IMG/VR virus record: IMGVR_UViG_3300032236_000747
Span: 290,681-354,680 of that record
Length of the DNA stretch: 64,000 nt
Strand: one strand, 5' to 3'
Numbering within the stretch: position 1 is the stretch's first letter; every line of letters begins with the position of its first letter. Shown here one piece after another: positions 3,705 through 61,501 of this stretch. A model generated the notes under the pieces. That model was not told where the DNA came from. It made no database searches and saw nothing but the letters and a program-made list of their open reading frames with translations. The position numbers were made by a program, and so were the translations under genes.

Positions 3705-4886
3705 ATGACACATCCAATACCATTTCCAACAAGCCCTCAAACAGGGCAACAATTTCTAGCAGATAATACAGTGACTTATATCTGGACTGGAGATCGTTGG
3801 TCTTCTAGTCGTGCTCTAGTTAATAGATATACAACATTTACTGTAGAAGAAGGCGCATTTGCAGATTTTGACTACAATCCATCAATTAATAAGTTATTAG
3901 ATAGTGGTGATAGTACTACAGAATCATACCGTTTTATAGATGCAGGCAGTTCTAATGTTGGACTTGAGCAAATAACTGTCACATCATCTTATCTAGCACC
4001 TAGCGGATACGCACCTGGTGATTTTGGCACAGTTACTTACTATATTGTACACGACGGCGCACAAGAAGCTGGTCTAGTTTTCCACGGACTAACCGGCGGT
4101 GGAGACCAAACAATAACAGGCACCTACGCTCAGGGCAGTAATACTTTAGTAATACCTCCATTATATCAGAGTTTATGGTCACAAATAGTATCTGTTAGAG
4201 CTTATGTGGTAGACAGTCTCGGTGATACATATTTTGCTGATGTTAGCGATATGTGGGAAACACCTTATGGTCCGTGTCTAGTAGCAGGCACATTAATGAC
4301 ATTGGCTGATGGAACACATAAGAAGATTGAAGACATTACATATGATGATGTATTGAGTGTATGGAACTTTGATCTAGGTGAAATGTCAGAAGCCCGTCCA
4401 CTATGGGTCAAACGCAAACAAACCGCCGGAGACTATACACTGGTAAAGTTCAGCGATGGTACAGAATTACGCACTGTTGGACACCATATATTCAACAAAC
4501 AAGTAGGCGAGTTTACAAAGATTATCACTGATGATACTCCGGTAGGTACTATCACCGTAAACGAACAAGGACAAGAGATTGCTATTGTTAGCAAAGAACT
4601 AGTGCGAGAAACTGTAGACTACTATAACATCTGGACACAGTATCATTTGAACGCTTATGCTAATGGTCTATTAACTGGCAACAAATATTGTAATATCTAC
4701 CCTGTTGTGGATATGAAGTATGTGAAAGATGACAGAACTTTACGCTCTGTAGAAGAATTTGCGGATATCGATGAGAAATATATCGCAGGTATGAGATTAC
4801 AAGAACAAACATTCGATTTAGCATTTATACAAACTATGGTAGATAGAATAGAATTATTAGACAGCAAGGCTGCTATAACAGCATAA
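3705..4886 (+). CDS. Virion-associated protein with Hint (intein/hedgehog-like) autoprocessing domain
   Basis: P/CLVAGTLMTLADG block A (Cys codon 4275), TVGH block B, YYNI...ANGLLTGN end (Asn codon 4680). Confidence 0.8.
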   Translation: MTHPIPFPTSPQTGQQFLADNTVTYIWTGDRWSSSRALVNRYTTFTVEEGAFADFDYNPSINKLLDSGDSTTESYRFIDAGSSNVGLEQITVTSSYLAPSGYAPGDFGTVTYYIVHDGAQEAGLVFHGLTGGGDQTITGTYAQGSNTLVIPPLYQSLWSQIVSVRAYVVDSLGDTYFADVSDMWETPYGPCLVAGTLMTLADGTHKKIEDITYDDVLSVWNFDLGEMSEARPLWVKRKQTAGDYTLVKFSDGTELRTVGHHIFNKQVGEFTKIITDDTPVGTITVNEQGQEIAIVSKELVRETVDYYNIWTQYHLNAYANGLLTGNKYCNIYPVVDMKYVKDDRTLRSVEEFADIDEKYIAGMRLQEQTFDLAFIQTMVDRIELLDSKAAITA

Positions 4887-9300: not shown

Positions 9301-9576
9301 ATGAGAGCAAAAGAATTTACAATTAACATTCCTATCAACATTAAGATCAATGGTGATGGCGAGCCTGAAATCAGCACAAGTCAAGATACCGAAGCTGATG
9401 TAGATTCTAACCCTGTATTTGTTCCGCCTCTACAGCAACATTTAGAGCTACACAAAGCAGAACTAGGTAAAGAAAGCCCTGTCATTGACAAACTTACACA
9501 AGATAATGATATTGGCACAGAACCGGACGGAACCGAAGCACAGCTAGCTAGACTCAAGCAACTGATGGCCCGATAA
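9301..9576 (+). CDS. Hypothetical protein, putative internal head protein
   Basis: MRAKEF N-terminus; TAAATA-N5-ATG. Confidence 0.55.
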   Translation: MRAKEFTINIPINIKINGDGEPEISTSQDTEADVDSNPVFVPPLQQHLELHKAELGKESPVIDKLTQDNDIGTEPDGTEAQLARLKQLMAR

Positions 9577-9598: not shown

Positions 9599-12500
9599 AT
9601 GGCCTTCATTCAGAAGTTATTCACAACACTACAAAACTACGATAATGGCGATACTCGTATTGGCGAGCTCAACCGTATTTGGTATGACTCTAATCGTAAT
9701 GCCTTCTACATATCTGACGGCCAAACAGAAGGCGGTATACTAATTGGTGGCGGTGGTGGTGGCGGAACTTACACACTATTAACAGCAACTACTACCCGCC
9801 TAGGTGGTGTTAGAATCGGTGCTGGTATTCAAGTTGATTATCGCGGTGTTATTAGTGTAAACACATCTACGCTAGCAGGACCACAAGGTCCTAAAGGCGA
9901 CACTGGTCCTAAAGGGGATACTGGAACACAAGGATCAGTTGGGGCTCAAGGCGATCCCGGTATAGGAGTTCCTGTCGGCGGCGTTGCTGGACAAGTGCTG
10001 GCTAAAATTGACGGTGTTGATTATAATACATATTGGGTTGATCAAACTGGTGGTACAGGTAATGGTAGCGTAATACAAAGTGATATAGCTCCTACTCCTG
10101 CAAATACTACGACTCTTTGGTATGATACAGTAGGCGGTCGTAGTTATGTGTATTATTACGGGGGTTGGGTTGACGCTAGCCCAGGAATAGGCGGGATACC
10201 TGGACCAAAAGGCGATACAGGTACGCAAGGACCTACTGGACTACAAGGAGACATAGGTCCAAAAGGTGATACAGGTACTCAGGGACTAATAGGTCCAATG
10301 GGTCCGAAAGGCGATACAGGTACTCGAGGCCTTACTGGTGATATAGGCCCAGTTGGACCAAAGGGAGATACCGGAACACAGGGATTGATAGGACCAACAG
10401 GACCTAAAGGGGACACTGGTACACAAGGTATTCAAGGACCGATTGGTCTAACTGGAAACACTGGAACACAGGGTATACAAGGAATTCCGGGCGAAGGCGT
10501 TCCGGTAGGCGGAACTGCCGGGCAAGTATTAACCAAGATTGACGGTGTTGATTACAATACACACTGGGTTGATGCTAATTTTTCTAGTTCAACTGCTACT
10601 GCTGGTGTAAGTGATATTACCGCAGGGACAGGAACTTATGTATCTGCTAATACAGGTTCAGTGAGCATCTGGGTTGATCCAAACGTAGTCGAAGGCACGG
10701 TAGCTCCTGCATCTACAGCTTCATTTTGGTATGATACTAATGTAGGTCGACTATTCATATATTATAATGGGTCTTGGATTGATGCTAGTCCGGGAACTAC
10801 TGGTATACCTGGTCCAAAGGGAGACACTGGAACTACTGGTCCAACTGGACTACAGGGAGATATTGGCCCTAAAGGTGATACCGGTACAGCAGCTACCCTA
10901 GTTATAGGAACAGTTACCTTAGGAACTTATACAAGTGTAATTAATGTAGGCGATCAATACAATGCTGTGTTTGACTTTGTATTACAGCAAGGACCTAAAG
11001 GTGATGCTGGGCTCAAAGGCGACACAGGAACCACAGGTGCAACTGGCGCACAAGGACCTAAAGGTGATACTGGCACCCAAGGAATACAAGGCATACAAGG
11101 TTTTCAGGGAATACAAGGCATTAAAGGTGATACTGGCACCACCGGAGCAACTGGTGCTACAGGCAGTGTTGGTCCAAAAGGTGATACCGGTACACAGGGT
11201 ATTCAAGGTATTCAGGGACCAAAAGGCGATACAGGAACTACCGGCGCACAAGGTATCCAAGGCATACAAGGTATCCAGGGCGTAACGGGTAGTACAGGTA
11301 CTCAAGGACCAAAAGGCGATACTGGCTCAATTGGCATAGCTACATTAAATTTAGGCACAGGTACATACGGCACACTAACATCGCAGACATTAAGTTTATG
11401 GATCGGCCAAGATGTTTCTGCTACAAGTAATGTAACATTTAACTCTGTGGCTATTAGTAATCTTGGTAGCATTTTATCATCTCAAGTAAACATTGATGCA
11501 TTTATTACAGTCTATACCTTAACTAATGTTGTTGACTATAGTTCTACTGCTACTTTGGCATCGGGTGTTTACGGTAACATCAATGGAGTTCAACCTCCGT
11601 GGACTGTATTTGATCTAAGTCCCGGACCTTCAGGTACTCCTGTAAGTACTATTGCTATTAACGATAAACTAACAGGTGCTGGTATTATTCCTAGTACCGT
11701 AGAAGATCGCGGCACCGGAACTTATGCATCTTATGTTATTGTTAATTTAGATCTAGCTGGCCTAGGACAGATACAACCTTTAGTTGGGGCGGCATTTAAC
11801 CTTGTACGCCCACTACAAAAAGCTGGCTTGGACATTACTACACAAAACAACACAGACATTTTCCTAAACAGCAATGGTCTAGGTGATGTACTAGTTAACA
11901 CCAACATTCTACCAGTTGCCACCAATGTAAGTAATTTAGGAAGTCCAGACTTTAGATGGAAGAGTTTGTATGTTGGCCCAGGTACTATCTATGTCTTAGA
12001 TGAAACATTAGGCAAAGATATTAGCATTGGCGCTCGTGACGGACTACTATATGTACAAAACGGTGCTGGGCTTGTAGTAGGTGAGTTTACTCTTATTGAC
12101 AATCAGATTAAGATTGCCAATCCCGATCGTGATATTATTATTGGAACTACTACTGCTACAGGTAGTGTAGTATTAAATCGTCCTATTAGAGTTAACACAC
12201 TAGCAGGACAAACTTCATTTAGTGTAGATAGACTAGGTCTAACTACAATCCACCCACTTATCTCAATGAGCTCTACTCAATCAGCATTGAATATTGTGGG
12301 CAACACTAGCGGACTACAGCAACCTCGTAATTTTAACGATACAATGTTGCAGATTACAGGTGCAGACAATACTGCTACTCGTGTAAGTTTAGATTCATTT
12401 GGTACAGGCACATATCCAGTTATTGCTGGTCGTCAAGCAGGCGGAACAGTAGCGTCTCCAAGTCAAACAAAATTAAACGATACGCTGTTAAGATTTAGTG

Positions 12501-15500
12501 CCCAGGGTTGGGGGACTACAGGATATGTAAGTACTATTGCTCGTATAAACATGCGAGCTCTACAAGATTTTACTGACACCGCCGCAGGCACAGGAATACG
12601 TTTTCAATTAACTCCTATAAACACAACTACAATACAAACTGTTACAGTAGACATCACTGCTACAGGTATAAGTTTTGTTGGTAACTCTATTGGCGGAATC
12701 ACATTCAGTAACAATGACAGACTAACTTACTTCCCAACACCTGTGGGACAAGCCGGCTTATATTTAAAGTCAGATGGTACTACAATGAGTTGGCAAACAG
12801 GAGGTGCTGGCGCCAAAGGTGATACCGGTACAGCAGCTACAATTACAATAGGTACTGTTACAGTTTCTACAACTACAGCAAGTGTAACCAATGTAGGTAA
12901 CTCTAGTAGTGCTATACTTAATTTTGTCTTACAACAAGGTCCACAAGGTATCCAGGGAGCTACCGGTAGCACAGGAACACAGGGACCCAAAGGCGATACA
13001 GGTACTACTGGCGCACAGGGCATACAAGGTATTCAAGGCATTCAGGGAGCAACCGGAACCAGTGCGACAGTTATGGTTGGACTAGTTACTACAGGTTCAA
13101 CAGCTCTAGTTACTAACACAGGAACAAGTGCTAACGCGGTACTTAACTTCCAAATTCCATGGATACCGGGCCCACAGGGCGCAACTGGTGCTACGGGAAG
13201 TACAGGTACACAAGGACCTAAAGGGGATACCGGAACACAGGGTATTCAAGGACCTATTGGGCCAACTGGAACATTTACAGGTAGTGTAGTTACTCTAGCA
13301 TCTGCTGATACTGCGGCACTGACTTATACATCATCAACTGGCATATTCTCATTCACTCCTAACAATGTCTATAAGACATTGTCTAGTTTAAGTGATGTTA
13401 ATGTTCCAGCACCCGGCAACAATCAAGTACTAACCTGGAGTACCGGCACTAATCGTTGGATTCCTACAACAGTAAACGGTGTTGGTGTTCCTATTACAGG
13501 TATTGCCTACTATGGTACATTCTACGACGTGGGCGCGGATCAAACAGCGCCACTGACAACCAGCAGTTATGTTGTAAGAATAGATCACACTGACGGTAGC
13601 AATGGCATCAGCATTGTTGACAATAATCAAATAACATTTGCCTACGGCGGAACTTATGAAGTAGAGTTTAGCATACAGTTCCAAAATACAGATACTAAAG
13701 ATGCCACTGTTAGTGTATGGTTTAGAAAGAACGGCGCAGACATAGCAGATTCAAACAGCATATTCACAGCGCCAAGTAAGCAAAACGGTAATGGATTCTT
13801 GATAGCAGTCACTCCGTTTATCGTCACAGTCAACGCCGGCGACTATGTACAGATTATGTGGTCAAGTGACAATACAGTAACCAAAATCGTCACAACAGCG
13901 GCTGGAACTACCCCAACTGTTCCACGCACACCGGGCGTTATTATCACAGTGGTGCCGGTTACCTCAGTGGTTATCCCAGGCACCGTTGAGAGTTTAACAG
14001 TAACGGGCAATGCCAGTGCCAATAACTTTATCTCAGCGTATCTGCCCATAGTGTCAAGTGGTACTACTACTGTGCTGTCTGTTACAAGTCCGCACTATAT
14101 ATCAGTAAGTGGTGTATCAACACAGACTATCAAACTGCCAAACGCTACCTTATTGACTGTAGGACAAAGTTACAAGATTGACAACAACTCAAGTGGCAAT
14201 GTTTACATACAAGATGCTACTGGTGCTCAGATTGGCGGTGCTCTGTTACCGGGTGCGGCCACTGAAGGTAGAGTTATTAATGTAGGTACAACAGCAGGCA
14301 CATGGGATGGTTGGAACTATGTTCCTGGCAATGTATCATTTGGCACAAGTCAGATGGTGTTTACTGGCGGGACCATTGTAGCCAGCACATTCACTGGTAG
14401 TTTAGTAGGTACTGCTACCACAGCAACCTACGCACAATCATTTAATACTGCGACTCTAGTAACTACTGCTGTTAGTGCTACTACTGCCACTAACGCTGGT
14501 TACGCATATTCATTTAATACAAACACAGTCGTAACTACAGCAGTTACAGCAACTAACGCTGGGTATGCCTACTCGTTCAACACATCAACCCTAGTATTGA
14601 AAGCAACTACAGCTACACTGGCACAAACTGTTACTGCGGCCGCACAGCCTGCTATCACAAGTGTAGGAACACTAACAAGTCTATCACTTCAGGGCAGTAT
14701 AACATTTAATGATGCCACTACACAATCTACAGCATGGACTGGTAGTACATATAGAATAATCAAAGTTGCTGACGGTTTTGGAGTAGGCCTACCATTCCAG
14801 TCTTATGTAACTGCTGATACCAGCACAGGCATTATTGTTTCCGCATTAACTGGTATTCCAGCAAGCCCTACATATAAAACTTGGACATTTGGGTTTGACG
14901 GAGTCTTAACATTCCCAGATAACTCAACACAAACAGTTGCGTGGAATACAAGCACAGCAGTTTATTATTCACAGATAAGGAATGCGCCTTCTACTACAGG
15001 CACAGCAGTATTCAATATTGTTAGTGCTACTAACATAACAGTTGGCGGAACAACAATACAAAACTTGTTTAGTGTATCAACAGCTACAGTGAGCAATACT
15101 GCTACTAGTCTTGTCTATAATACTAGCACCGGTGTTTATACATTTACACCATTTAGTCTAAACACCAGTACACTAATGGCTCGAGCTGTCACTGTTACAA
15201 GTTCAACACAAGCGGCTATTACCGCACTTGGTACATTAACGTCTCTATCAGTTAGCGGAGCATCAACAGTTAGTGGGCTTGCTACCTTTAACTATACAGG
15301 CGGTGGATCAACTTCAACTATTTCTGTCAGTGGGCAAAATAGCAAAGGTGGCGCACTATATCACGACTTCCTAAGTGCTACTAACGGGTTAGCCACTGCT
15401 ACCAATGCTACCAAATATTTCCGTCTAAACAACGTAGGCACCTTAGAAATATTGAATAGTGCTTATAATGCAACTGTATTCTCAGTAACTGATAACGGAT

Positions 15501-16525
15501 ATATTGCTATCAATGCGGCATCCGGTGTTTCAAACGGTTTGCCTGGTAATAATGCTATAGCGATGAATAACAACAGTTACATCTACGATGATGGTAACTA
15601 TCACCTTACAAGTAAGTCTGGTAGCATTTGGATCAATGCCAACGGTGGTAATGATGTTAATATAAACACACAAGTCCCTAGTGGTACTATGCCAGGCGGG
15701 TTGAATGTACAGGGTGCTATAACAAGTCAAGGCTCTGGTACAGCCGCTACATCGTTTATATCAGGTGTAAACGCATATAGTGGCGTAGCACTACAGCTGA
15801 CTCCAAACGGTACAGGTGCGGCAAACCAAGCTATTCGTGATACATCAAGTGCGGCAAGCACAATGTATTTTGACGTTAATACTGGTGGTAGTGCTCACGG
15901 CCAATTCCAATTTAGATCAAGCAATGCGTTTAGTCAACTCTTGGTTGTAAGTAATAGTGCCGTAACAGTTAACAGACAAATGTTGATAGGTGGTGGTAGT
16001 CAAGGCGCCTATGTTACTATTAACGGAACAAACACTTACAACATCAATGGGCCTTTTGGATACTTAAACGGTGGCGGCGCAGGCGCCATCAACAGCAGTG
16101 GATCAACGGGTAATCAAGGGTTTTCATTACAATGTAGTGGACGTATTCAAGCTAATGAAGTTGACGTTCCTTCAGACGAACGATTAAAAGACATACAGGG
16201 CACTATTCCTTTAGATAAGGCACTACAGTTTGTTCGAGCCGTAGATGGTATCTTGTATACTTGGAAGCCAGGATTTGGCGACAACGGATTAAAGTCAGGG
16301 TTTAATGCTCAAGGTGTATACAAAGCTGGATTTGATCATATGGTTGTTCCTGTGCCAAATGATCGTGTAGCGGGTTCAACTGATGCTGATGGATTTACAA
16401 GCCCAGATAAGTTCCAATTAAGTTTAAACTATCAAGAAGCTATCCCATATCATCACGAAGTTATCAAGCACTTGCTAGATCGTATTGAGCAGCTAGAAGC
16501 TACAGTAGCCAAGTTAACTAAATAA
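9599..16525 (+). CDS. Giant collagen-like tail fibre with C-terminal peptidase S74 intramolecular chaperone
   Basis: Several G-X-Y tracts (GPKGDTG repeats), duplicated modules, C-terminal SDERLKDI...GFNAQ...LNYQ and coiled coil. Confidence 0.9.
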   Translation: MAFIQKLFTTLQNYDNGDTRIGELNRIWYDSNRNAFYISDGQTEGGILIGGGGGGGTYTLLTATTTRLGGVRIGAGIQVDYRGVISVNTSTLAGPQGPKGDTGPKGDTGTQGSVGAQGDPGIGVPVGGVAGQVLAKIDGVDYNTYWVDQTGGTGNGSVIQSDIAPTPANTTTLWYDTVGGRSYVYYYGGWVDASPGIGGIPGPKGDTGTQGPTGLQGDIGPKGDTGTQGLIGPMGPKGDTGTRGLTGDIGPVGPKGDTGTQGLIGPTGPKGDTGTQGIQGPIGLTGNTGTQGIQGIPGEGVPVGGTAGQVLTKIDGVDYNTHWVDANFSSSTATAGVSDITAGTGTYVSANTGSVSIWVDPNVVEGTVAPASTASFWYDTNVGRLFIYYNGSWIDASPGTTGIPGPKGDTGTTGPTGLQGDIGPKGDTGTAATLVIGTVTLGTYTSVINVGDQYNAVFDFVLQQGPKGDAGLKGDTGTTGATGAQGPKGDTGTQGIQGIQGFQGIQGIKGDTGTTGATGATGSVGPKGDTGTQGIQGIQGPKGDTGTTGAQGIQGIQGIQGVTGSTGTQGPKGDTGSIGIATLNLGTGTYGTLTSQTLSLWIGQDVSATSNVTFNSVAISNLGSILSSQVNIDAFITVYTLTNVVDYSSTATLASGVYGNINGVQPPWTVFDLSPGPSGTPVSTIAINDKLTGAGIIPSTVEDRGTGTYASYVIVNLDLAGLGQIQPLVGAAFNLVRPLQKAGLDITTQNNTDIFLNSNGLGDVLVNTNILPVATNVSNLGSPDFRWKSLYVGPGTIYVLDETLGKDISIGARDGLLYVQNGAGLVVGEFTLIDNQIKIANPDRDIIIGTTTATGSVVLNRPIRVNTLAGQTSFSVDRLGLTTIHPLISMSSTQSALNIVGNTSGLQQPRNFNDTMLQITGADNTATRVSLDSFGTGTYPVIAGRQAGGTVASPSQTKLNDTLLRFSAQGWGTTGYVSTIARINMRALQDFTDTAAGTGIRFQLTPINTTTIQTVTVDITATGISFVGNSIGGITFSNNDRLTYFPTPVGQAGLYLKSDGTTMSWQTGGAGAKGDTGTAATITIGTVTVSTTTASVTNVGNSSSAILNFVLQQGPQGIQGATGSTGTQGPKGDTGTTGAQGIQGIQGIQGATGTSATVMVGLVTTGSTALVTNTGTSANAVLNFQIPWIPGPQGATGATGSTGTQGPKGDTGTQGIQGPIGPTGTFTGSVVTLASADTAALTYTSSTGIFSFTPNNVYKTLSSLSDVNVPAPGNNQVLTWSTGTNRWIPTTVNGVGVPITGIAYYGTFYDVGADQTAPLTTSSYVVRIDHTDGSNGISIVDNNQITFAYGGTYEVEFSIQFQNTDTKDATVSVWFRKNGADIADSNSIFTAPSKQNGNGFLIAVTPFIVTVNAGDYVQIMWSSDNTVTKIVTTAAGTTPTVPRTPGVIITVVPVTSVVIPGTVESLTVTGNASANNFISAYLPIVSSGTTTVLSVTSPHYISVSGVSTQTIKLPNATLLTVGQSYKIDNNSSGNVYIQDATGAQIGGALLPGAATEGRVINVGTTAGTWDGWNYVPGNVSFGTSQMVFTGGTIVASTFTGSLVGTATTATYAQSFNTATLVTTAVSATTATNAGYAYSFNTNTVVTTAVTATNAGYAYSFNTSTLVLKATTATLAQTVTAAAQPAITSVGTLTSLSLQGSITFNDATTQSTAWTGSTYRIIKVADGFGVGLPFQSYVTADTSTGIIVSALTGIPASPTYKTWTFGFDGVLTFPDNSTQTVAWNTSTAVYYSQIRNAPSTTGTAVFNIVSATNITVGGTTIQNLFSVSTATVSNTATSLVYNTSTGVYTFTPFSLNTSTLMARAVTVTSSTQAAITALGTLTSLSVSGASTVSGLATFNYTGGGSTSTISVSGQNSKGGALYHDFLSATNGLATATNATKYFRLNNVGTLEILNSAYNATVFSVTDNGYIAINAASGVSNGLPGNNAIAMNNNSYIYDDGNYHLTSKSGSIWINANGGNDVNINTQVPSGTMPGGLNVQGAITSQGSGTAATSFISGVNAYSGVALQLTPNGTGAANQAIRDTSSAASTMYFDVNTGGSAHGQFQFRSSNAFSQLLVVSNSAVTVNRQMLIGGGSQGAYVTINGTNTYNINGPFGYLNGGGAGAINSSGSTGNQGFSLQCSGRIQANEVDVPSDERLKDIQGTIPLDKALQFVRAVDGILYTWKPGFGDNGLKSGFNAQGVYKAGFDHMVVPVPNDRVAGSTDADGFTSPDKFQLSLNYQEAIPYHHEVIKHLLDRIEQLEATVAKLTK

Positions 16526-31452: not shown

Positions 31453-33783
31453 ATGATCACAGTTGTTAAGCGCAACGGAGAGAGAGTTCCATTAGATATC
31501 AACAAGATACAGAGACAAGTAGCACACGCATGTAAGGGGATAGACGGAGTAAGCCCTAGCATGATTGAAATCAAAGCCCAGATTGAAATACATGATGGGA
31601 TGACAACACAGACCATAGACGAGCTCTTGCTCAAGGCAATGGTTGACTTAATAGACGAGTCAGAGAATCCAGAGATTAACAACGTTAACTATCAATATGT
31701 GGCAGGCCGTCAAAAGGTCAGTATGTTGCGTAAAGAAATCTACGGAGAGTACGAACCTCCTAGACTTTTTGATATAGTTAAGAAAAATACTGAATCGGGT
31801 CTATACAGCAAAGAACTACTACAATGGTATACAGAAGATGAGTGGAACATTATCGACTTATTCATTGATCATGCCAAGGACGAAACATATACGTTTGCTG
31901 CTATTGCGCAGCTAGCAGAAAAATATCTTGTGCAGAATCGGGCCACTGGTCAAATCTACGAAACTCCGCAAGTACGTTATGCAGTTGCAGCGGCAACCGC
32001 TTTCCATAATGAACCTAAAGAAAAGAGATTAAAATATGTTAAAGAATATTATGAGTGCGCATCTGATGGTCACTTTACTTTGGCTACTCCTGTACTTGCT
32101 GGCCTTGGTACTCCTACCAAACAGTTCAGTTCATGTGTTCTTATTAGTTCTGACGATACACTCGACTCTATTTTTGCCGCCGGAGAAATGATGGCCAAGT
32201 ATGCTAGCAAGCGTGCTGGCATTGGTTTAGAGATTGGACGCATAAGACCTGTTGGAGCCCCTATTAGAAATGGAGAGATCAAACATACAGGTTTAATCCC
32301 ATTCCTTAAGAAATGGTTTGCTGACCTTCGTAGTTGTAGTCAAGGCGGCATTCGTAACGCAAGCTGTACAGTTACATTCCCTGTCTGGCATTATCAGTTT
32401 GAAGACCTTATCGTTCTAAAGAACAATCAAGGCACTGAAGAAGTGCGTGTTCGTCAAATGGATTATAGTGTAGTTGTCAACAAGATGTTTTGGAATCGTT
32501 ATAAGAACAATGAAATGATTACATTGTTTGATCCGCATGACGTACCAGATCTCTATGAATCTTATTATCGTAATAGCACAGAGTTTGAAAAGTTATATAC
32601 AAAATATGAGCAAGATAAGAACATTAAAAAGAAAGTTGTATCGGCAGATGCGATATTCAAAGGTGGAATCCTTAAGGAGAGGACTGATACGGGGCGTATA
32701 TATCTTGTCAATATCGACAACGTTATTGGCCAGGGACCGTTTGATACTACCACAGATCCAATATATCAATCAAATTTATGCCAAGAGATACTTTTACCCA
32801 CAAAGCCTTTCCAGAGAATTGAAGATCCAGAGGGACGAATTGCTCTTTGCACTCTTGGCAGCGTAAACTGGGGAGCGTTCCGTAACCCACAAGAAATGCG
32901 CAAAGCCTGTAGAGTATTACTACGTTCGTTGTCTAATCTACTAAGCTATCAAGATTTTTTAAGTGTTCAAAGTCAGTTAGCTAATAATGAGTTTGAGCCA
33001 CTAGGCATCGGTGTAACCAACCTTGCTTATTGGCATGCCAAACGTAACCTGAAGTACGGAAACCCTGACTCACTTGCTGAAGTCAAGCGTTGGATGGAAC
33101 ATCAAGCATTTTACTTGACAGAAGTCAGCGTTGAACTAGCACAAGAGAGAGGAGCTTGCGAGCGTAGCTCATACACATATTACGGTAAAGGTATTTTTCC
33201 TTGGGAACGACGTAACCCAGGAGTTAATGAGCTAACTGACTTTACTCCTAGTTTAGATTGGGAACCACTACGTGCTCGTATGAAACAATACGGTATTCGT
33301 AATGCTACACTAATGGCCGTGGCACCGGTCGAATCCAGCTCAGTTGTGTTAAACTCCACCAACGGAATTGAAATGCCGATGGAATTGATTTCTGTGAAGG
33401 AATCGAAAGCTGGATCGTTTGTACAAGTCGTGCCAGAGTACAAACGTCTAAAAAATCGTTATCAGCTAATGTGGGATCAAATGGACTGCGTTGATTACTT
33501 GAAGACAGCATGTGTGCTAGGAGCATACATTGACCAAAGTCTAAGTACCAATACATTCTACAATCCAGCACACTTTGTAGGTAACAAGGTTCCTGCTACT
33601 TTGGTTGCTAAAAACCTAATGCTGGCTTACAAATGGGGTTTGAAGACAGTATACTATAGTTTAATCAATAAGGTTGGCGCTAAAGCAGAAATAACAGGCA
33701 CCAATGTTATACCCGGCATTGCTATTAGCTCTGCTGACAACGTTCTATTAATAGACGAAGACTGCGAGGCATGTAAGTTATGA
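31453..33783 (+). CDS. nrdA: Class Ia ribonucleotide reductase alpha subunit
   Basis: N-terminal ATP cone VVKRNG; FSSCVL, SNLCQEI, C-terminal CEACKL. Confidence 0.98.
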   Translation: MITVVKRNGERVPLDINKIQRQVAHACKGIDGVSPSMIEIKAQIEIHDGMTTQTIDELLLKAMVDLIDESENPEINNVNYQYVAGRQKVSMLRKEIYGEYEPPRLFDIVKKNTESGLYSKELLQWYTEDEWNIIDLFIDHAKDETYTFAAIAQLAEKYLVQNRATGQIYETPQVRYAVAAATAFHNEPKEKRLKYVKEYYECASDGHFTLATPVLAGLGTPTKQFSSCVLISSDDTLDSIFAAGEMMAKYASKRAGIGLEIGRIRPVGAPIRNGEIKHTGLIPFLKKWFADLRSCSQGGIRNASCTVTFPVWHYQFEDLIVLKNNQGTEEVRVRQMDYSVVVNKMFWNRYKNNEMITLFDPHDVPDLYESYYRNSTEFEKLYTKYEQDKNIKKKVVSADAIFKGGILKERTDTGRIYLVNIDNVIGQGPFDTTTDPIYQSNLCQEILLPTKPFQRIEDPEGRIALCTLGSVNWGAFRNPQEMRKACRVLLRSLSNLLSYQDFLSVQSQLANNEFEPLGIGVTNLAYWHAKRNLKYGNPDSLAEVKRWMEHQAFYLTEVSVELAQERGACERSSYTYYGKGIFPWERRNPGVNELTDFTPSLDWEPLRARMKQYGIRNATLMAVAPVESSSVVLNSTNGIEMPMELISVKESKAGSFVQVVPEYKRLKNRYQLMWDQMDCVDYLKTACVLGAYIDQSLSTNTFYNPAHFVGNKVPATLVAKNLMLAYKWGLKTVYYSLINKVGAKAEITGTNVIPGIAISSADNVLLIDEDCEACKL

Positions 33784-37520: not shown

Positions 37521-37586
37521 TTATTGCTGTATGAAGCAAAGAGAAAAGTGTTCTGGACGCGGGTTCGACTCCCGCCAGGTCCACCA
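37521..37586 (+). ncRNA. ssrA: Permuted two-piece tmRNA, acceptor piece
   Basis: T-arm GCGGG-TTCGACT-CCCGC, acceptor 3' strand CAGGTCC-A-CCA. Confidence 0.93.
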
Positions 37587-37597
37587 TAAGGAAGTTT

Positions 37598-37840
37598 GTG
37601 AAAGAGTATTACATAGTTAATGGTAAAAAGTGTAAAAGAGATTCATTGCAAGATGACCTCATTTGGTCCATGAAACAATCCGATAACACTTTCAAACATT
37701 ATTGGATAGACGAACAGCAAGGATTAGGAAACAGTCACGGTGGACAATATATGCCTCCGTGGATTATGAATCGTAATCGTTATGTTGTTGATGATTTTGG
37801 AACGGTTGTAAAATATCTTCCATACAAAGTTTCTTTATGA
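37598..37840 (+). CDS. 80-aa ORF inside the tmRNA intervening segment
   Basis: AAGGA RBS plus GTG right after CCA; stop ends 1 nt before tmRNA G1. Confidence 0.7.
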   Translation: MKEYYIVNGKKCKRDSLQDDLIWSMKQSDNTFKHYWIDEQQGLGNSHGGQYMPPWIMNRNRYVVDDFGTVVKYLPYKVSL

Positions 37841-37841
37841 T

Positions 37842-38030
37842 GGGCCTGCCATGGTTTCGACAGGGCAAAGAGTAACAGAGTGGACAGCAGGGCAAAGCAG
37901 AAGCCCTTAGGGTTGGGGATTCCCGGCCGTAGACGCAAAAAAAGTAAATGCAAACGACTCACAGTTTCTAATGGTTGCCTGATAAAGGCTTCCGGGGTAG
38001 GAAATACCTTGCAACAGAAAATAACAGAAC
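37842..38030 (+). ncRNA. ssrA: Permuted two-piece tmRNA, coding piece; tag ANDSQFLMVA*
   Basis: GGGCCTG pairs with CAGGTCC giving G3.U70; GGTTTCGAC; TAAAT-GCA resume at 37950; TGA TAA at 37980-85; 3' end approximate. Confidence 0.92.
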
Positions 38031-48683: not shown

Positions 48684-50081
48684 ATGAAACTCGCAAAAAA
48701 CATTATTCTGAACACTGACTCATACAAAGTGAGCATGTTCAAACAATACCCAGCAGGTACTACAGGTGTATATTCTTACATTGAATCACGAGGCGGACGT
48801 TACGATCAGACAGTATTCTTCGGACTCCAAGCGTTCATTAAAGAGTACTTACTCGACCCCATCACACAGGCAGACATTGATGTGGCTGACGAAATCCTTA
48901 CCGCGCACGGTGAGCCTTTCAACCGAGCAGGATGGCAATACATTCTTGACAAGCACAATGGACGCCTCCCAGTTGTCATTCGGGCCGTCCCTGAAGGAAC
49001 ACTTGTACCTGTCAAAAACGTACTCGCTACTATTGAAAACACTGACCCAGAATGCTTCTGGTTAACTACTTGGCTTGAAACAGCCTTGCTTCGTGCTATT
49101 TGGTATCCTACCACAGTAGCTACTCAATCTTACACAATCAAGAAAGTTATTCTTGACTATTTGGAGAAAACAGGTGAAACTAGTACAATCAATTTTAAAC
49201 TGCACGATTTCGGTGCTCGTGGTGTATCTAGCTTTGAGTCAGCGGGCATCGGAGGCGCAGCACACTTGGTTAACTTCATGGGTAGTGATACTATTTCTGG
49301 TGTTCTTTATGCTCGTGAATACTATGATGCTGGGATTGCAGGTTTTAGTATCCCTGCCGCCGAGCACTCAACAATCACTAGTTGGGGCCGTGCTGGTGAA
49401 GTCGATGCCTACAGAAACATGCTCAAACAGTTTGGACGAGAAGGATCAATCTTCGCAGTTGTCTCCGACAGTTACGACATTTTCAATGCCGCAAGCAAAC
49501 TCTGGGGTGAAGAACTCCGAGATGAAGTAATCGCTAGCGGAGCAACAGTTGTTATTCGACCAGACAGCGGTGATCCTGTTACTGTTAACCGTCAGTTGAT
49601 TGCTATCTTAGATCAAAAGTTTGGACACACAGTTAACAGCAAAGGATTCAAAGTCCTTAACAATGTTCGCCTCATTCAAGGAGATGGTGTAAATGAACTT
49701 ACTATTCGCGGGATTCTGGGTGCTTTTATGGCTCTTGGGTATAGTGCTGATAATATTGCTTTTGGCATGGGTGGAGCGTTGTTGCAAATCGTGGACCGCG
49801 ACACACAACGATTCGCAATGAAGTGCAGTTCCATGCAAGTGGGCGATAAGTGGGTAGATGTACAAAAAGATCCAATCACTGACGCCGGTAAGAAGTCTAA
49901 AGCAGGTAGTGTAACTCTTTGGGAGAGCGGTGGAGAATGGGTAAGTGCTGTTGATCAACCAAAAGGTTGGACAGATAAAGGATTTGGCCCATTCACCGAA
50001 ATGCTTGAAGAAGTTTACCGTGATGGTCGCCTAATCAAAGAAATTACTTTTGACCAGGTTCGGGCAAACAGCAATAAATAA
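48684..50081 (+). CDS. nadV: Nicotinamide phosphoribosyltransferase (NAMPT)
   Basis: TDSYKVS, LHDFGARG, IPAAEHSTIT, VVSDSYD, VVIRPDSGDP, LIQGDGV motifs. Confidence 0.97.
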   Translation: MKLAKNIILNTDSYKVSMFKQYPAGTTGVYSYIESRGGRYDQTVFFGLQAFIKEYLLDPITQADIDVADEILTAHGEPFNRAGWQYILDKHNGRLPVVIRAVPEGTLVPVKNVLATIENTDPECFWLTTWLETALLRAIWYPTTVATQSYTIKKVILDYLEKTGETSTINFKLHDFGARGVSSFESAGIGGAAHLVNFMGSDTISGVLYAREYYDAGIAGFSIPAAEHSTITSWGRAGEVDAYRNMLKQFGREGSIFAVVSDSYDIFNAASKLWGEELRDEVIASGATVVIRPDSGDPVTVNRQLIAILDQKFGHTVNSKGFKVLNNVRLIQGDGVNELTIRGILGAFMALGYSADNIAFGMGGALLQIVDRDTQRFAMKCSSMQVGDKWVDVQKDPITDAGKKSKAGSVTLWESGGEWVSAVDQPKGWTDKGFGPFTEMLEEVYRDGRLIKEITFDQVRANSNK

Positions 50082-50674: not shown

Positions 50675-50923
50675 ATGACCTACGCTGAATATTTCGACCT
50701 AGTAACCTATAAAGCAACATATCACCTAGGTGATAGAATCATAGGTAAGCATAATGGTATTCCATTTGTAGGCACTGTTGGCAATGATAGACAACTTAAT
50801 CCAACGGAAGGTCCACGTATTAGTGTTCATTTAGATTTGCCATTAAAGGTTGACGGAACAGTTAAATGTGTTATACTAGTTAAACACAAAGATGTTAAAC
50901 GTCTTAAAGAATTAAGCGTCTGA
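50675..50923 (+). CDS. Hypothetical SH3-like small protein
   Basis: 82 aa; last 8 nt overlap tRNA 5' end. Confidence 0.6.
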   Translation: MTYAEYFDLVTYKATYHLGDRIIGKHNGIPFVGTVGNDRQLNPTEGPRISVHLDLPLKVDGTVKCVILVKHKDVKRLKELSV

Positions 50924-50990
50924 GGCTAAGTGGTATTGCAAGGGCTTCTAAAACCCGAGACAGCAGGTTCGAACCCTGTCAGGCGCACCA
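50916..50990 (+). tRNA. tRNA with CUA anticodon (amber suppressor-like)
   Basis: 75 nt; GCGTCTG/CAGGCGC-ACCA acceptor; D-loop AGTGGTA; loop TTCTAAA; T-loop TTCGAAC; anticodon stem only 3 WC pairs. Confidence 0.75.
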
Positions 50991-51005
50991 AACAAAAGAA
51001 AAAAT

Positions 51006-51299
51006 ATGAATGTAACTGTAATGGGTGATCGTGTATTGATCAAACGAGTTGTTAATGAAGCTAAAACAACAGGCGGTATTATTTTCTCCTGGAATGGTGA
51101 AGATAAAACCAGCGAAGGGATTGTAATGGAAGTTGGTCCTGGCCATAAGACTGACGAAGATATTATTATTCCTACAGGTGTTGAAGTTGGAGACAGAGTT
51201 CTCTATAATGTCACAGCTGGTGTACCAGTAAAGGTAGACGGCGAGGATATGACTATGTTAAAAGCAGAAGATATCTACGCTGTAGTTGGAGAAGAGTAA
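51006..51299 (+). CDS. groES: Co-chaperonin GroES
   Basis: GDRVLIKR..TTGGII..VMEVGPG..VGDRVLY. Confidence 0.93.
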   Translation: MNVTVMGDRVLIKRVVNEAKTTGGIIFSWNGEDKTSEGIVMEVGPGHKTDEDIIIPTGVEVGDRVLYNVTAGVPVKVDGEDMTMLKAEDIYAVVGEE

Positions 51300-51325
51300 A
51301 AATGGAAAATCCAAGGAGAAACGCA

Positions 51326-51685
51326 ATGCGTAGTGTAAAAGTAAACAAAAAAGAGTTAATGACTATTCTAGCAGACAATAAAAAGAAACATGTCAAAGAG
51401 TTTGAAGAAGCAGTCAAAGATTATAAAAAGGCCGCCCTTAAGGTAGCCAAGGAACACGTAGAACTAGCCAAGACAGGCGAGCTAGATAAGATTGCTAAGA
51501 TCCGTAGTATGCCAAACGGGCCTATAAGCTATGAAGACAGCTATAATCGTGCTATCCGTATGATGGAACTAAGCGTAGACGAAGTCATCGAACTTGAAGA
51601 ACAGATCTTTAATCAGCTGGTCCTTGATGAGTGGATGTGGAAGCAGGCATTTGTCGCTTCTGCTAGTTTGTATAAAACAATTTAA
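51326..51685 (+). CDS. Hypothetical helical protein
   Basis: AAGGAG RBS places the start at 51326. Confidence 0.7.
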   Translation: MRSVKVNKKELMTILADNKKKHVKEFEEAVKDYKKAALKVAKEHVELAKTGELDKIAKIRSMPNGPISYEDSYNRAIRMMELSVDEVIELEEQIFNQLVLDEWMWKQAFVASASLYKTI

Positions 51686-51763
51686 AGAACCTGGGTTTGA
51701 CAGTTTTTCCTGCACCCCCTAAAAACTGTCACTAAATATATTGTCAACTAAGGAGAAACTAAA

Positions 51764-52336
51764 ATGACAAAATCGTAGATTGAATATAGTTGTAAGGACC
51801 TAGTGTTCCATTTTAACAAAAAACATCTAGAAGATCCGACCATACCTATGTGGGTCGTTAAAGCACATGGCGTCACGTTCTACGTCAATCACGTAACAGC
51901 AGATATGCCTTGGAGTACCAAAGAAACTCCTGACAATGATAAAACCAAAGGCAGTATCAAGTTCCAGAAATGTAAACTAGTCATTGACGATGATAACTGT
52001 GCTACTATCTCTAAGTTAGGTGTACTTGAATCTCTTACCTTAGATCATCCCAGAGTAGTACACGCTCGTATCATGGCTGCTAATGGCGGAAAGTTTCACT
52101 GTGCTTTAAAGCTAGGCGAGTTCAAGCACAGCAAAATCAAATTCATCCAAGGCGCTTGTAGTAGTGGGTATATTATCTGCGACTTACTTGAACCTAAAGA
52201 GATTACTATGGCTAGTTTAAAGTATACTCGTGACTTCCGTATATTAAGTGCCAACGAAGTATACTACAAGGAATATGCCAAGACTGGGGATTTTATCGAC
52301 GAAGATGCCTTGTGGGATGAAGACGAAGATGATTAA
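51764..52336 (+). CDS. Hypothetical protein with in-frame TAG at codon 5 (readthrough candidate; code-11 alternative start GTG 51803)
   Basis: TAAATA 51733, AAGGAG-N8-ATG ACA AAA TCG TAG ATT GAA..., in frame with ORF 51803-52336. Confidence 0.65.
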
Positions 52337-52443
52337 TAGTTTGCCTATTACAGGCATTGAAAAATACAATAGCTTTTTCCTATAAAATCGTTGATTTCAT
52401 TAGTAAATACTATTATAATATAACTTTACAAGGAGAGACACAC

Positions 52444-52893
52444 ATGTCTATTACAATAAAAAATCTCGAAAGCGCACTTGCTGGTGAGTCACAAGCTCAC
52501 ATCAAGTACCGTTACTTTGCCAAACTAGCAAGAGCAGAGGGCCATGAAGAAGTTGCTAAACACTTTGAACACACAGCGGACCAAGAGTTGCTACACGCAT
52601 GGGGGCATTTAGAGTTGCTTATCGGTAAGCCAACAACTAAAGAGTGTTTGGAAAAAGCCATTGAAGGTGAAACATACGAGTTTACCGAAATGTATCCAAA
52701 GATGGAAGAAGAAGCCGAACTCGAAGGCAACGACGAAGCATTGCTCGAAGCACGTCTTCAAACAGCAGAAAGCAAAGAACACGCAGAGCAATTTGCCCAA
52801 GTTCTAGCCAAAGCTGAAAAACGTTTTGCAGCATTGACCAAGGTCGAGAAGAGACACGCATTAGCATATCAACAAGTAAAGGAGACACTATAA
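52444..52893 (+). CDS. rbr: Rubrerythrin (ferritin-like di-iron domain)
   Basis: AGESQAHIKY, QELLHA, GETYEFTEMYP, EHA motifs; AAGGAG RBS. Confidence 0.92.
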   Translation: MSITIKNLESALAGESQAHIKYRYFAKLARAEGHEEVAKHFEHTADQELLHAWGHLELLIGKPTTKECLEKAIEGETYEFTEMYPKMEEEAELEGNDEALLEARLQTAESKEHAEQFAQVLAKAEKRFAALTKVEKRHALAYQQVKETL

Positions 52894-53024
52894 TGGATCG
52901 CATTTGTATTGTATGTGGACACGTTCACGATGAAGAACTAGAAGGTAAGTGGGAAGAACTAGCAGAAACATTTGAATGTCCAGAATGTGGTGTGGGCAAA
53001 GAAGACTACGTGTTAATGGAATAA
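52893..53024 (+). CDS. Rubredoxin (43 aa, not in ORF track)
   Basis: CIVCGHVHDE...WEEL..TFECPECGVGKEDY. Confidence 0.92.
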   Translation: MDRICIVCGHVHDEELEGKWEELAETFECPECGVGKEDYVLME

Positions 53025-55199: not shown

Positions 55200-55566
55200 T
55201 ATATACCAGAACGACAATGAGGGTATATTTTTAGCCAACTTATCAGAAGATGAACAAACAGCAGCCACACAGTGGTTGAGCAAGTTTGAAACCGAGCAAG
55301 ATATTAATATATACTTCTATCAAGGTGAGGTAGAAGTGCCTTGGTTTTTGCACAGCATGGCCGCCAGCAAGTATAAGTACATTGAGCTAGATACTAAAAT
55401 AGACGTCGGACTATTATTAGCAGGTTACTTGTTAGGTAAACCAAATACATTTTATGCTAGTAAAAATCCCAACATTTTAGCTGTTTACAATCACATCAAT
55501 CAAAATCAAGTTAGGGGTGTGGTTGAATTTTTTGAAAGAACACTAGGTGCAGAAAAACAACGATAA
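55165..55566 (+). CDS. Hypothetical protein
   Basis: 133 aa, precedes clpX. Confidence 0.65.
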   Translation: MTIKITLVTPPDIYQNDNEGIFLANLSEDEQTAATQWLSKFETEQDINIYFYQGEVEVPWFLHSMAASKYKYIELDTKIDVGLLLAGYLLGKPNTFYASKNPNILAVYNHINQNQVRGVVEFFERTLGAEKQR

Positions 55567-56788
55567 TAATCACAGTTGTGATTTTTGTGGGAAAAGTAAA
55601 GACGATGTAGAAAAACTTATAGTAGGAGAAAGCTCTGCTATATGTAATGACTGTGTTGAACTTTGCGTAGACATCCTCAAGGATGATAAAGTTAAAAAGT
55701 TTCCAGCAGATGAAACTAAACAACTATTCAATCCTGTGTCCATTAAAGACTTTCTTGACAACTATATCATTGGACAAGACGAAGCTAAGATTGCTATCAG
55801 TGTTGCTGTATGCCAACACTTTAAGCGCATTAACAATCCCAATAAAGATATACAGTTAGAAAAGACCAACGTATTAATGATGGGTCCGACTGGTTGTGGT
55901 AAAACACTAATGGCCAAGAAGATAGCTGAATATCTAGATCTACCATTTGCTATATGTGATGCTACAGGTATAACTGAAGCAGGATACGTAGGTGACGATG
56001 TGGAAAGCGTTCTAACACGTTTATTAAATGCCGCTGACGGAGATGTTGAAAAAGCACAGCGTGGCATTGTTTATATCGACGAAATCGATAAGCTAAGTCG
56101 TAAAGGTGAAAACGTTAGTACCACAAGAGATGTAGGCGGAGAGGGCGTCCAGCAAGCTCTACTTAAAATGGTAGAAGGCACTATCATGCGTTTGCCCAGC
56201 GATAATAAACGCAAGCACCCCAGGGGTGAAATGAACGAAATCGATACAAGTCAAATCTTGTTTATCTGCGGTGGGGCTTTTGTTGGCTTAGATAAGATTA
56301 TTCAAAAGCGTACAAGTTCCAGTAGCATTGGATTCCACGGTACTCCAACTAAGAAAGACGAAGTGTTGGCTAGCTATCATGATGTTACTACCAAAGATTT
56401 GATTAACTTTGGACTTATTCCTGAGTTTATTGGACGCTTTGGTCTTATCACAGCAGTTGACGAGCTAGGCGAAACTCAGTTAATATCTATTCTAAAAGAA
56501 CCTAAGAATAGTTTGATATCGCAATATCAATATCTGTTTCAGTTAGATGGCGTAGAACTAGCATTTGAAGATACAGCATATTCTGCTATTGCTGACAAAG
56601 CCAAAGAGATGAAGACTAATGCTAGGGGCTTAAAGAGCATTTTAGAAAAAACATTATTGCCCTATCAGTTTGAAGCTATCGATCTTGTAGCACGAGGTTT
56701 AACAAAGATTGTTATAAGTAAAGATACAGTAGAAGGAAAACCTGCTACACTTATATTTGAACAACAGAATGAGAAAACCAAACAGTAA
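55547..56788 (+). CDS. clpX: ClpX AAA+ unfoldase
   Basis: CDFCGK zinc domain, [34 protein letters not shown] loop. Confidence 0.97.
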
Positions 56789-61002: not shown

Positions 61003-61205
61003 AAAAAGAAATATTTGTTGCTAGGAAAATAGAAATACTATCTTGGAAAAAATGGTTTGCTTGGTATCCTGTAAAGATACACGGAAAAAGGGTATGGCTT
61101 AAAAATGTATATCGTCGTTGCATTAACACCTATGTTGATTACGATGATTGGAGTCGTTATGAGTATGGTACTTTATTTGATATATTGAAAGAAGACATAA
61201 CATGA
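60999..61205 (+). CDS. Small Trp-rich protein (FAWxPV family)
   Basis: KWFAWYPVK...EYGTLFDIL. Confidence 0.65.
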   Translation: MKKEIFVARKIEILSWKKWFAWYPVKIHGKRVWLKNVYRRCINTYVDYDDWSRYEYGTLFDILKEDIT

Positions 61206-61501
61206 AAGTTAACCCTAAAATAGAAGATGCTTTTCTTCCCATGTACGAAGATGATATTATTCCTCTTGAAGAAATAAAGAAAAAACGTGATCGATATTGG
61301 GCCATGTTGCGCAGAGCTAAAAACGAGTATTTAAGTCTAGTAGACGGCACAGAGTACAACGATGGTATTAATGGTTTCTATTATTTCATGCAGCAGAACT
61401 ACGGTCTTCAACCAGAGTTGATTGACGGCAACCTAGGATCAACGTATAATATAGTTGACGAAAAGAAATATCTATTGTTTTTACTAAAGTACGGATCATA
61501 G
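61202..61501 (+). CDS. Small protein ending in TAG, in frame with next ORF
   Basis: Ends KKYLLFLLKYGS-TAG-GCA-ACC-GCC-ATG. Confidence 0.7.
   Translation: MKVNPKIEDAFLPMYEDDIIPLEEIKKKRDRYWAMLRRAKNEYLSLVDGTEYNDGINGFYYFMQQNYGLQPELIDGNLGSTYNIVDEKKYLLFLLKYGS

Follow-up and report, generated by a model that had tools for sequence, protein, structure and literature searches.

A conserved early amber codon in a phage gene is paired with a phage-encoded suppressor tRNA, pointing to a translational switch

Results

The locus and its neighborhood

We analyzed a window of 64,000 nucleotides (positions 290,681 to 354,680 of the IMG/VR record IMGVR_UViG_3300032236_000747, a 355-kb giant-phage contig). Megablast of the region against GenBank phages gave no match. 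The gene of interest is on the + strand and is preceded by the ribosome-binding site AAGGAG (51750-51755), which is followed after an 8-nt spacer by an ATG (51764-51766), the sense codons ACA AAA TCG (leader M-T-K-S, 51764-51775) and an in-frame amber codon, TAG (51776-51778). The reading frame continues with ATT GAA TAT AGT TGT AAG GAC CTA and the GTG at 51803-51805, which gene callers take as the start of a 177-codon ORF that ends at the TAA at 52334-52336. From the codon after the TAG, the body of the gene (51779-52336) comprises 185 codons plus TAA and encodes a two-domain protein of unknown fold, here called the FHFNK protein. The original prediction of a strong initiation signal that leads into an amber codon in frame with this ORF is thus correct. 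A window-wide scan for a ribosome-binding site, a start codon, at most 20 codons, a TAG and then at least 50 open codons found only this site with a strong ribosome-binding site and an ATG; the pattern is therefore not a common chance arrangement. An independent Logan assembly of the probable source run covers 50900-51861 with no difference, at word depth 15.

A tRNA gene with anticodon CUA lies upstream on the same strand. ARAGORN missed it, but an Rfam search (RF00005) placed it at 50916-50987 with 46 bits against a cut-off of 29 and an anticodon loop of UUCUAAA. Its 3′ end lies 789 nt upstream of the TAG, and with the encoded CCA the gene extends over 50916-50990. It carries G1-C72 and the discriminator A73. 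The tRNA starts 8 nt before the end of the upstream 82-codon ORF (50675-50923), such that the TGA stop of this ORF lies inside the tRNA acceptor stem.

The surrounding auxiliary genes encode a protein that is nicotinamide phosphoribosyltransferase-like, by resemblance of its 465-aa translation only (48684-50081); GroES (Cpn10; 51006-51299); rubrerythrin, followed by a 43-codon ORF with two Cys-x-x-Cys pairs that is probably a rubredoxin (52441-53024); a ClpX-like ATPase (55547-56788); class I ribonucleotide reductase (31453-33783); and a 2308-residue collagen-repeat protein with an S74 chaperone domain (9599-16525). In the same sample, a relative lacks the GroES gene and the 127-codon gene (joint 50990 to 51761), and there the tRNA is followed after 30 nt, starting TAAATA, by the amber-leader gene. 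The window also contains a permuted (two-piece) tmRNA gene at 37525-37982 on the + strand, which scores 106.9 bits in Rfam and is also called by ARAGORN. Beta-proteobacterial-type or permuted tmRNAs lie 1-3 kb from the CUA tRNA in three related loci (L003, L005 and L071), which hints at a betaproteobacterial host and a “translation island.”

A promoter-like motif, TAAATA, lies at 51733-51738 and resembles the T4 late promoter TATAAATA. In 40 of 78 related loci the motif lies 25-33 nt upstream of the ATG, against about 3 expected. Within the window the motif (often ATAAATA; for example at 9574, 16519, 26613, 29191, 51733 and 52404) occurs 33 times on the + strand and 11 times on the − strand, and 21 of the + copies lie within 60 nt upstream of a + strand gene start. 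The description of the gene as a late gene in the original prediction rests on this motif.

The TAG is conserved and is followed by a coding signal

The ORF has 1225 homologs, on contigs of up to about 360 kb or more. About half are called from M/V-F-H-F-N-K, and the rest carry an N-terminal extension with Q where the window has TAG. This Q is an artifact of code-15 translation of TAG and says nothing about which amino acid is inserted: the DNA encoding one such protein reads ATG ACA CAA CAA TAG ATT and does not translate to the database sequence. Public collections hold this family in three forms (called from the GTG, called from an internal Met in M-W-V-V-K, or with Q in place of TAG), and alignments built from them can mislead.

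We examined the DNA of 18 IMG/VR loci, 80 metagenome loci and a few others retrieved through protein look-ups. In 17 of 17 IMG/VR loci, and in 93 of 99 related loci overall (43-99% protein identity), a ribosome-binding site, an ATG, 1-8 further sense codons and a TAG directly precede the conserved I-x-Y-x-C-K-D-L-V-F-H-F-N-K. A strong ribosome-binding site plus ATG precedes the TAG in all 78 non-redundant related loci. Counting the ATG, the leader has 2-9 sense codons (2 in 48 of 78 loci), and its sequence is not conserved. In contrast, the TAG is invariant in 73 unique in-register sequences, in which the next codon is always Ile and the nine codons after the TAG vary mainly at third positions, the signature of a translated region. 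The base after the TAG is A in all 93 TAG-type loci.

The GTG at 51803 is probably an ordinary valine codon. Across relatives the codon at this position is GTG, GTA, GTC or GTT, with a third-position entropy of 1.46 bits. An AlphaFold model (pLDDT 89.7) places residues 4-17 in one continuous core strand that carries a conserved Cys, and a start at the GTG would remove part of this predicted first strand together with the Cys. The fold and family of the protein are not recognizable from our searches. A homolog of 67-69% identity, scanned in place of the window protein, has no Pfam hit. Foldseek found nothing below E = 0.03 in the PDB and only the protein's own family in BFVD, and the ESM Atlas gave no usable lead. 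The predicted RNA fold around the TAG is unremarkable (z = 0.57).

The gene is linked to a CUA tRNA

ARAGORN and Rfam together found a CUA tRNA upstream on the same strand in 47 of 49 non-redundant TAG-type loci with at least 1.5 kb of upstream sequence. Distances run from 27 to 3234 nt, and 14 are within 55 nt. The 55 unique tRNAs from related loci share G1-C72, C2-G71, A73 and an invariant UCUAA, and show compensatory changes in all four stems. They are therefore functional genes under selection. Comparison with neighboring phage tRNAs gave no isotype, as identities were about 0.7, at noise level; A73 and similarity to phage tRNA-Lys genes hint at Lys, although Gln is also possible. In two relatives (L007 194-279 and L069 3546-3624, both on the − strand) the Rfam “freshwater-2” RNA motif lies just upstream of the CUA tRNA on the opposite strand.

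The window is not recoded

A greedy ORF set covers 93% of the window under the standard code (code 11), with 59 TAA, 29 TGA and 2 TAG stops among 90 ORFs, although TAG is as common a trinucleotide as TGA (2555 against 2093 over both strands). One of the two TAG-terminated ORFs (61202-61501) is followed 9 nt later, in frame, by the next gene. Of about 90 genes, only the FHFNK gene has a credible in-frame TAG; the others include the collagen-repeat tail fiber, proteins with Mtd_N domains (major tropism determinant, N-terminal) and ribonucleotide reductase. Related loci and the complete genome of Rhizobium phage RHph_I1_18 still use TAG as a stop in about 10% of ORFs, so that an efficient suppressor would extend some phage proteins. 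The +4 base and the distance to the next stop for natural TAG terminators show no special pattern.

The same leader occurs on PTH2 genes and in other phage lineages

In the six loci whose FHFNK gene lacks the TAG, an identical leader (AAGGAG, 7 nt, ATG, one codon, TAG, then ATT or ATA) heads a PTH2-like peptidyl-tRNA hydrolase gene. This gene opens a tight operon that ends in the FHFNK gene, downstream of a CUA tRNA. Contigs of 147-164 kb show the CUA tRNA immediately upstream of amber-leader PTH2-like and/or single-domain FHFNK genes, and one contig has two such leaders. A 164-kb phage contig (L114) has a cluster of 25 tRNAs that contains both a CUA and a UCA suppressor-type tRNA (1767-1840 and 2767-2842); the CUA tRNA is the one directly upstream of the amber-leader gene.

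PTH2-FHFNK fusion proteins also start with an amber leader, although in some fusions (L117, L113 and L115) an ATG lies four or five codons after the stop and the gate could be leaky there. Among the fusion proteins, P0206 and P0268 score above the cut-off of the PTH2 profile (Pfam PF01981) or carry a precomputed PTH2 hit, whereas the PTH2 part of P0211, which has no relative in IMG/VR, is recognized only by its N-terminal motif. P0206 scores 32 bits, the gene of Sinorhizobium phage Phosso 60.6 bits, and the gene of locus L100 21.1 bits, just below the cut-off.

Cultured phages carry related arrangements. In RHph_I1_18, an unannotated 82-codon FHFNK gene (M-S-E-F-M-TAG-N-E-S-C...; MN988519.1, about 11019-11270) ends 30 nt before the annotated “tRNA-Pyl(cta),” while the PTH2 gene of this phage has an ordinary start. 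The PTH2 genes of Agrobacterium phage Atu_ph07 (MF403008.1, 198552-198884) and Phosso (PV764938.1, 176653-176985) are annotated from an internal Met and so lack their conserved first strand (..K-L-R-I-Y-S-I-I/V-R-x-D-L-E), which lies upstream, in frame, behind a leader stop. In both phages PTH2 and FHFNK share an operon. However, Yersinia phage fHe-Yen9-04 and Sinorhizobium phage phiN3, which carry suppressor tRNAs, have no FHFNK or PTH2 gene within 2.5 kb.

The leader stop matches the suppressor anticodon

A TAG leader goes with a CUA tRNA in dozens of loci. For the other two stop codons the match rests on a single case each. In contig L110, the leader ATG ACA CAC TAA of a PTH2-FHFNK fusion goes with a tRNA with anticodon UUA 1.06 kb upstream, and no canonical start codon lies between the stop and the conserved PTH2 N-terminus. 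In Atu_ph07, the leader is ATG ATT GGC GAA CAC TTT TGA, and the only suppressor tRNA of the phage has anticodon UCA (PMC6102473); we recovered this tRNA at 430713-430787. A relative without a leader (L120) has no suppressor tRNA within 4 kb. Phosso has a TAG leader, but its predicted CUA tRNA was not found in the 17 kb examined, nor by tRNA similarity or by synteny with the Atu_ph07 suppressor.

Discussion

The reading that we consider probable, on comparative evidence and in the absence of peptide, ribosome-profiling or reporter data, is that the gene starts at the ATG at 51764 and that its fifth codon, UAG, is decoded by the phage's own CUA tRNA. RNA libraries compared with the region contain only relatives and may contain DNA. 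In this reading the 190-residue protein is made only when the tRNA is present and charged, and if release factor 1 wins at the UAG only a four-residue peptide is released, so the gate is clean. The base after the stop, A in the 93 jumbo-clade loci and a purine in most others, may favor suppression over RF1, as E. coli context effects would suggest. The pair would be one instance of a widespread phage module, in which a suppressor tRNA is paired with a short leader (start, a few codons, matching stop) on genes for the FHFNK-domain protein, for a PTH2-type peptidyl-tRNA hydrolase, or for fusions or operons of the two. Such an arrangement acts as a translational AND gate, or coherent feed-forward loop, that ties production of translation-linked proteins to suppressor activity. 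The comparison of homologs thus supports the readthrough proposed in the original prediction, while the timing or host-gating purpose that it proposed remains an inference.

There are several other possibilities for this arrangement, each of which we consider unlikely. The ATG-to-TAG stretch could be a separate mini-ORF, with the tRNA irrelevant and the protein starting at GTG 51803, the start that gene callers pick, from an AAGGA 4 nt upstream. This spacing is probably poor for initiation, the nine codons after the TAG are conserved as protein with third-position variation, the valine codon is often not a GTG, and the segment belongs to a confidently predicted core strand. Ribosomes might instead terminate at the TAG and reinitiate on the adjacent codon, which in the jumbo-phage clade is always ATT, ATC, ATA or ATG, and AUU may serve as a rare start codon, as in infC. 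In other lineages, however, this codon is AAC, AGA, ACA, GTT or CTG, which excludes reinitiation there, and reinitiation explains neither the tight linkage to a CUA tRNA nor the match between leader stop and suppressor anticodon. A sequencing or assembly error, or a recent nonsense mutation in a decaying gene, is excluded by the independent assembly and by the presence of the TAG in more than 90 independent assemblies and in cultured phage genomes.

Genome-wide reassignment of TAG would account for the suppressor tRNA and for the scarcity of TAG stops, and some databases already translate the site as Q. Coding density and the lack of any other credible in-frame TAG argue against it, within the 64 kb of the genome that we analyzed, as does the use of TAG as a stop in related loci and RHph_I1_18. 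The TAG could also be read through without any regulatory purpose, either as a neutral change tolerated once the tRNA existed or as a dependency that merely locks the tRNA gene into the genome. Consistent with this, it lies in a non-conserved N-terminal stretch where any amino acid would do, and the tRNA persists in phages whose FHFNK gene has lost the TAG. This alternative is somewhat less remote than the others but still doubtful, since the TAG is invariant across 73 unique sequences whose synonymous sites are saturated and the same leader design arose on at least two unrelated genes and with all three stop codons. In addition, the stop always sits within the first ten codons, which a clean gate predicts and drift does not.

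Full-text searches found genome-wide recoding and synthetic analogs but no description of this module. In code 15 and code 4 phages (crAss-like, Lak and others; bioRxiv 10.1101/2021.08.26.457843), a phage suppressor tRNA likewise reads a stop codon inside phage genes while the host uses the standard code, and has been proposed as a post-transcriptional regulator. There, 26-71% of genes carry in-frame stops and coding density collapses under code 11, whereas here one gene in about 90 carries one stop, at a fixed position in the first ten codons and physically linked to the tRNA, and the gated genes are PTH2/FHFNK genes rather than lysis or structural genes. The prfB gene (release factor 2) also depends on how an early in-frame stop, UGA, is decoded, but it escapes by a +1 frameshift and its product reads the stop; here escape would be by a cognate suppressor tRNA, and no feedback by the product has been shown. 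The synthetic “leak dampener” of Ho et al. (NAR 2020, PMC7969014) uses the same feed-forward logic, a suppressor tRNA plus nonsense codons in a regulated gene, to abolish leaky expression, but is an engineered circuit in E. coli plasmids, whereas the arrangement here is natural, conserved across phage lineages and tied to particular gene families. The output of the ribosome-rescue factor ArfA, made only when tmRNA rescue is limiting, is similarly set by the state of termination or rescue, but through a truncated non-stop mRNA and tmRNA tagging; no rescue activity has been shown for the FHFNK protein. Programmed readthrough in Q-beta A1 and MuLV gag-pol also decodes an in-frame stop as sense to give the functional product, but uses host near-cognate tRNAs at low efficiency to add a C-terminal extension and gives two products; here the stop is N-terminal, termination gives no product and the virus supplies a cognate tRNA. 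The lambda bar minigenes (AUG-AUA-stop) are two- or three-codon ORFs with a functional link to peptidyl-tRNA hydrolase, but they are not continuous with a downstream protein and are not read through, and the link to Pth is toxicity by peptidyl-tRNA drop-off.

The purpose of the gate is inferred. The gated genes are tied to translation by fusion of PTH2 with the FHFNK domain, by shared operons with overlapping stop and start codons, and by neighboring tRNA clusters and tmRNA genes. Suppressor-driven readthrough is known to create non-stop ribosomes, and very short ORFs are known to cause peptidyl-tRNA drop-off (PMC8012679), and coupling PTH2/FHFNK output to suppressor activity therefore makes sense. 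Most likely, proteins that recycle peptidyl-tRNA or act on ribosomes appear in step with the readthrough that the suppressor causes; alternatively, they are kept silent until the suppressor has accumulated. Because the FHFNK protein has no recognizable fold or family, this “damage control” purpose is conjecture. A counter-defense role is also possible, as the ochre-leader fusion of L110 lies among Tad2-like and Acb2/Tad1-like hairpin genes (667-957 and 3923-4595), which are anti-Thoeris and anti-CBASS sponge families. A more speculative and rather unlikely possibility is a closed control loop, in which the PTH2/FHFNK proteins would act on the suppressor's own aminoacyl- or peptidyl-tRNA, on release factor or on ribosomes that have read through, and would thereby set the level of stop-codon readthrough in the infected cell. 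That would be a phage-encoded homeostat or switch for termination, analogous to prfB, and possibly the first evolutionary step toward full genetic-code change.

The arrangement also exposes systematic mis-annotation, not only of the genes of RHph_I1_18, Atu_ph07 and Phosso but of thousands of metagenomic proteins called from an internal codon or with a spurious Q. Many standard-code phages carry suppressor tRNAs with no known target, and this finding gives them a concrete, conserved target: a single stop codon in the leader of a neighboring gene. It links suppressor tRNAs genetically to peptidyl-tRNA hydrolase and to a new protein domain, and would be a natural counterpart of the amber-gated circuits built in synthetic biology. 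It may also show how genome-wide recoding begins.
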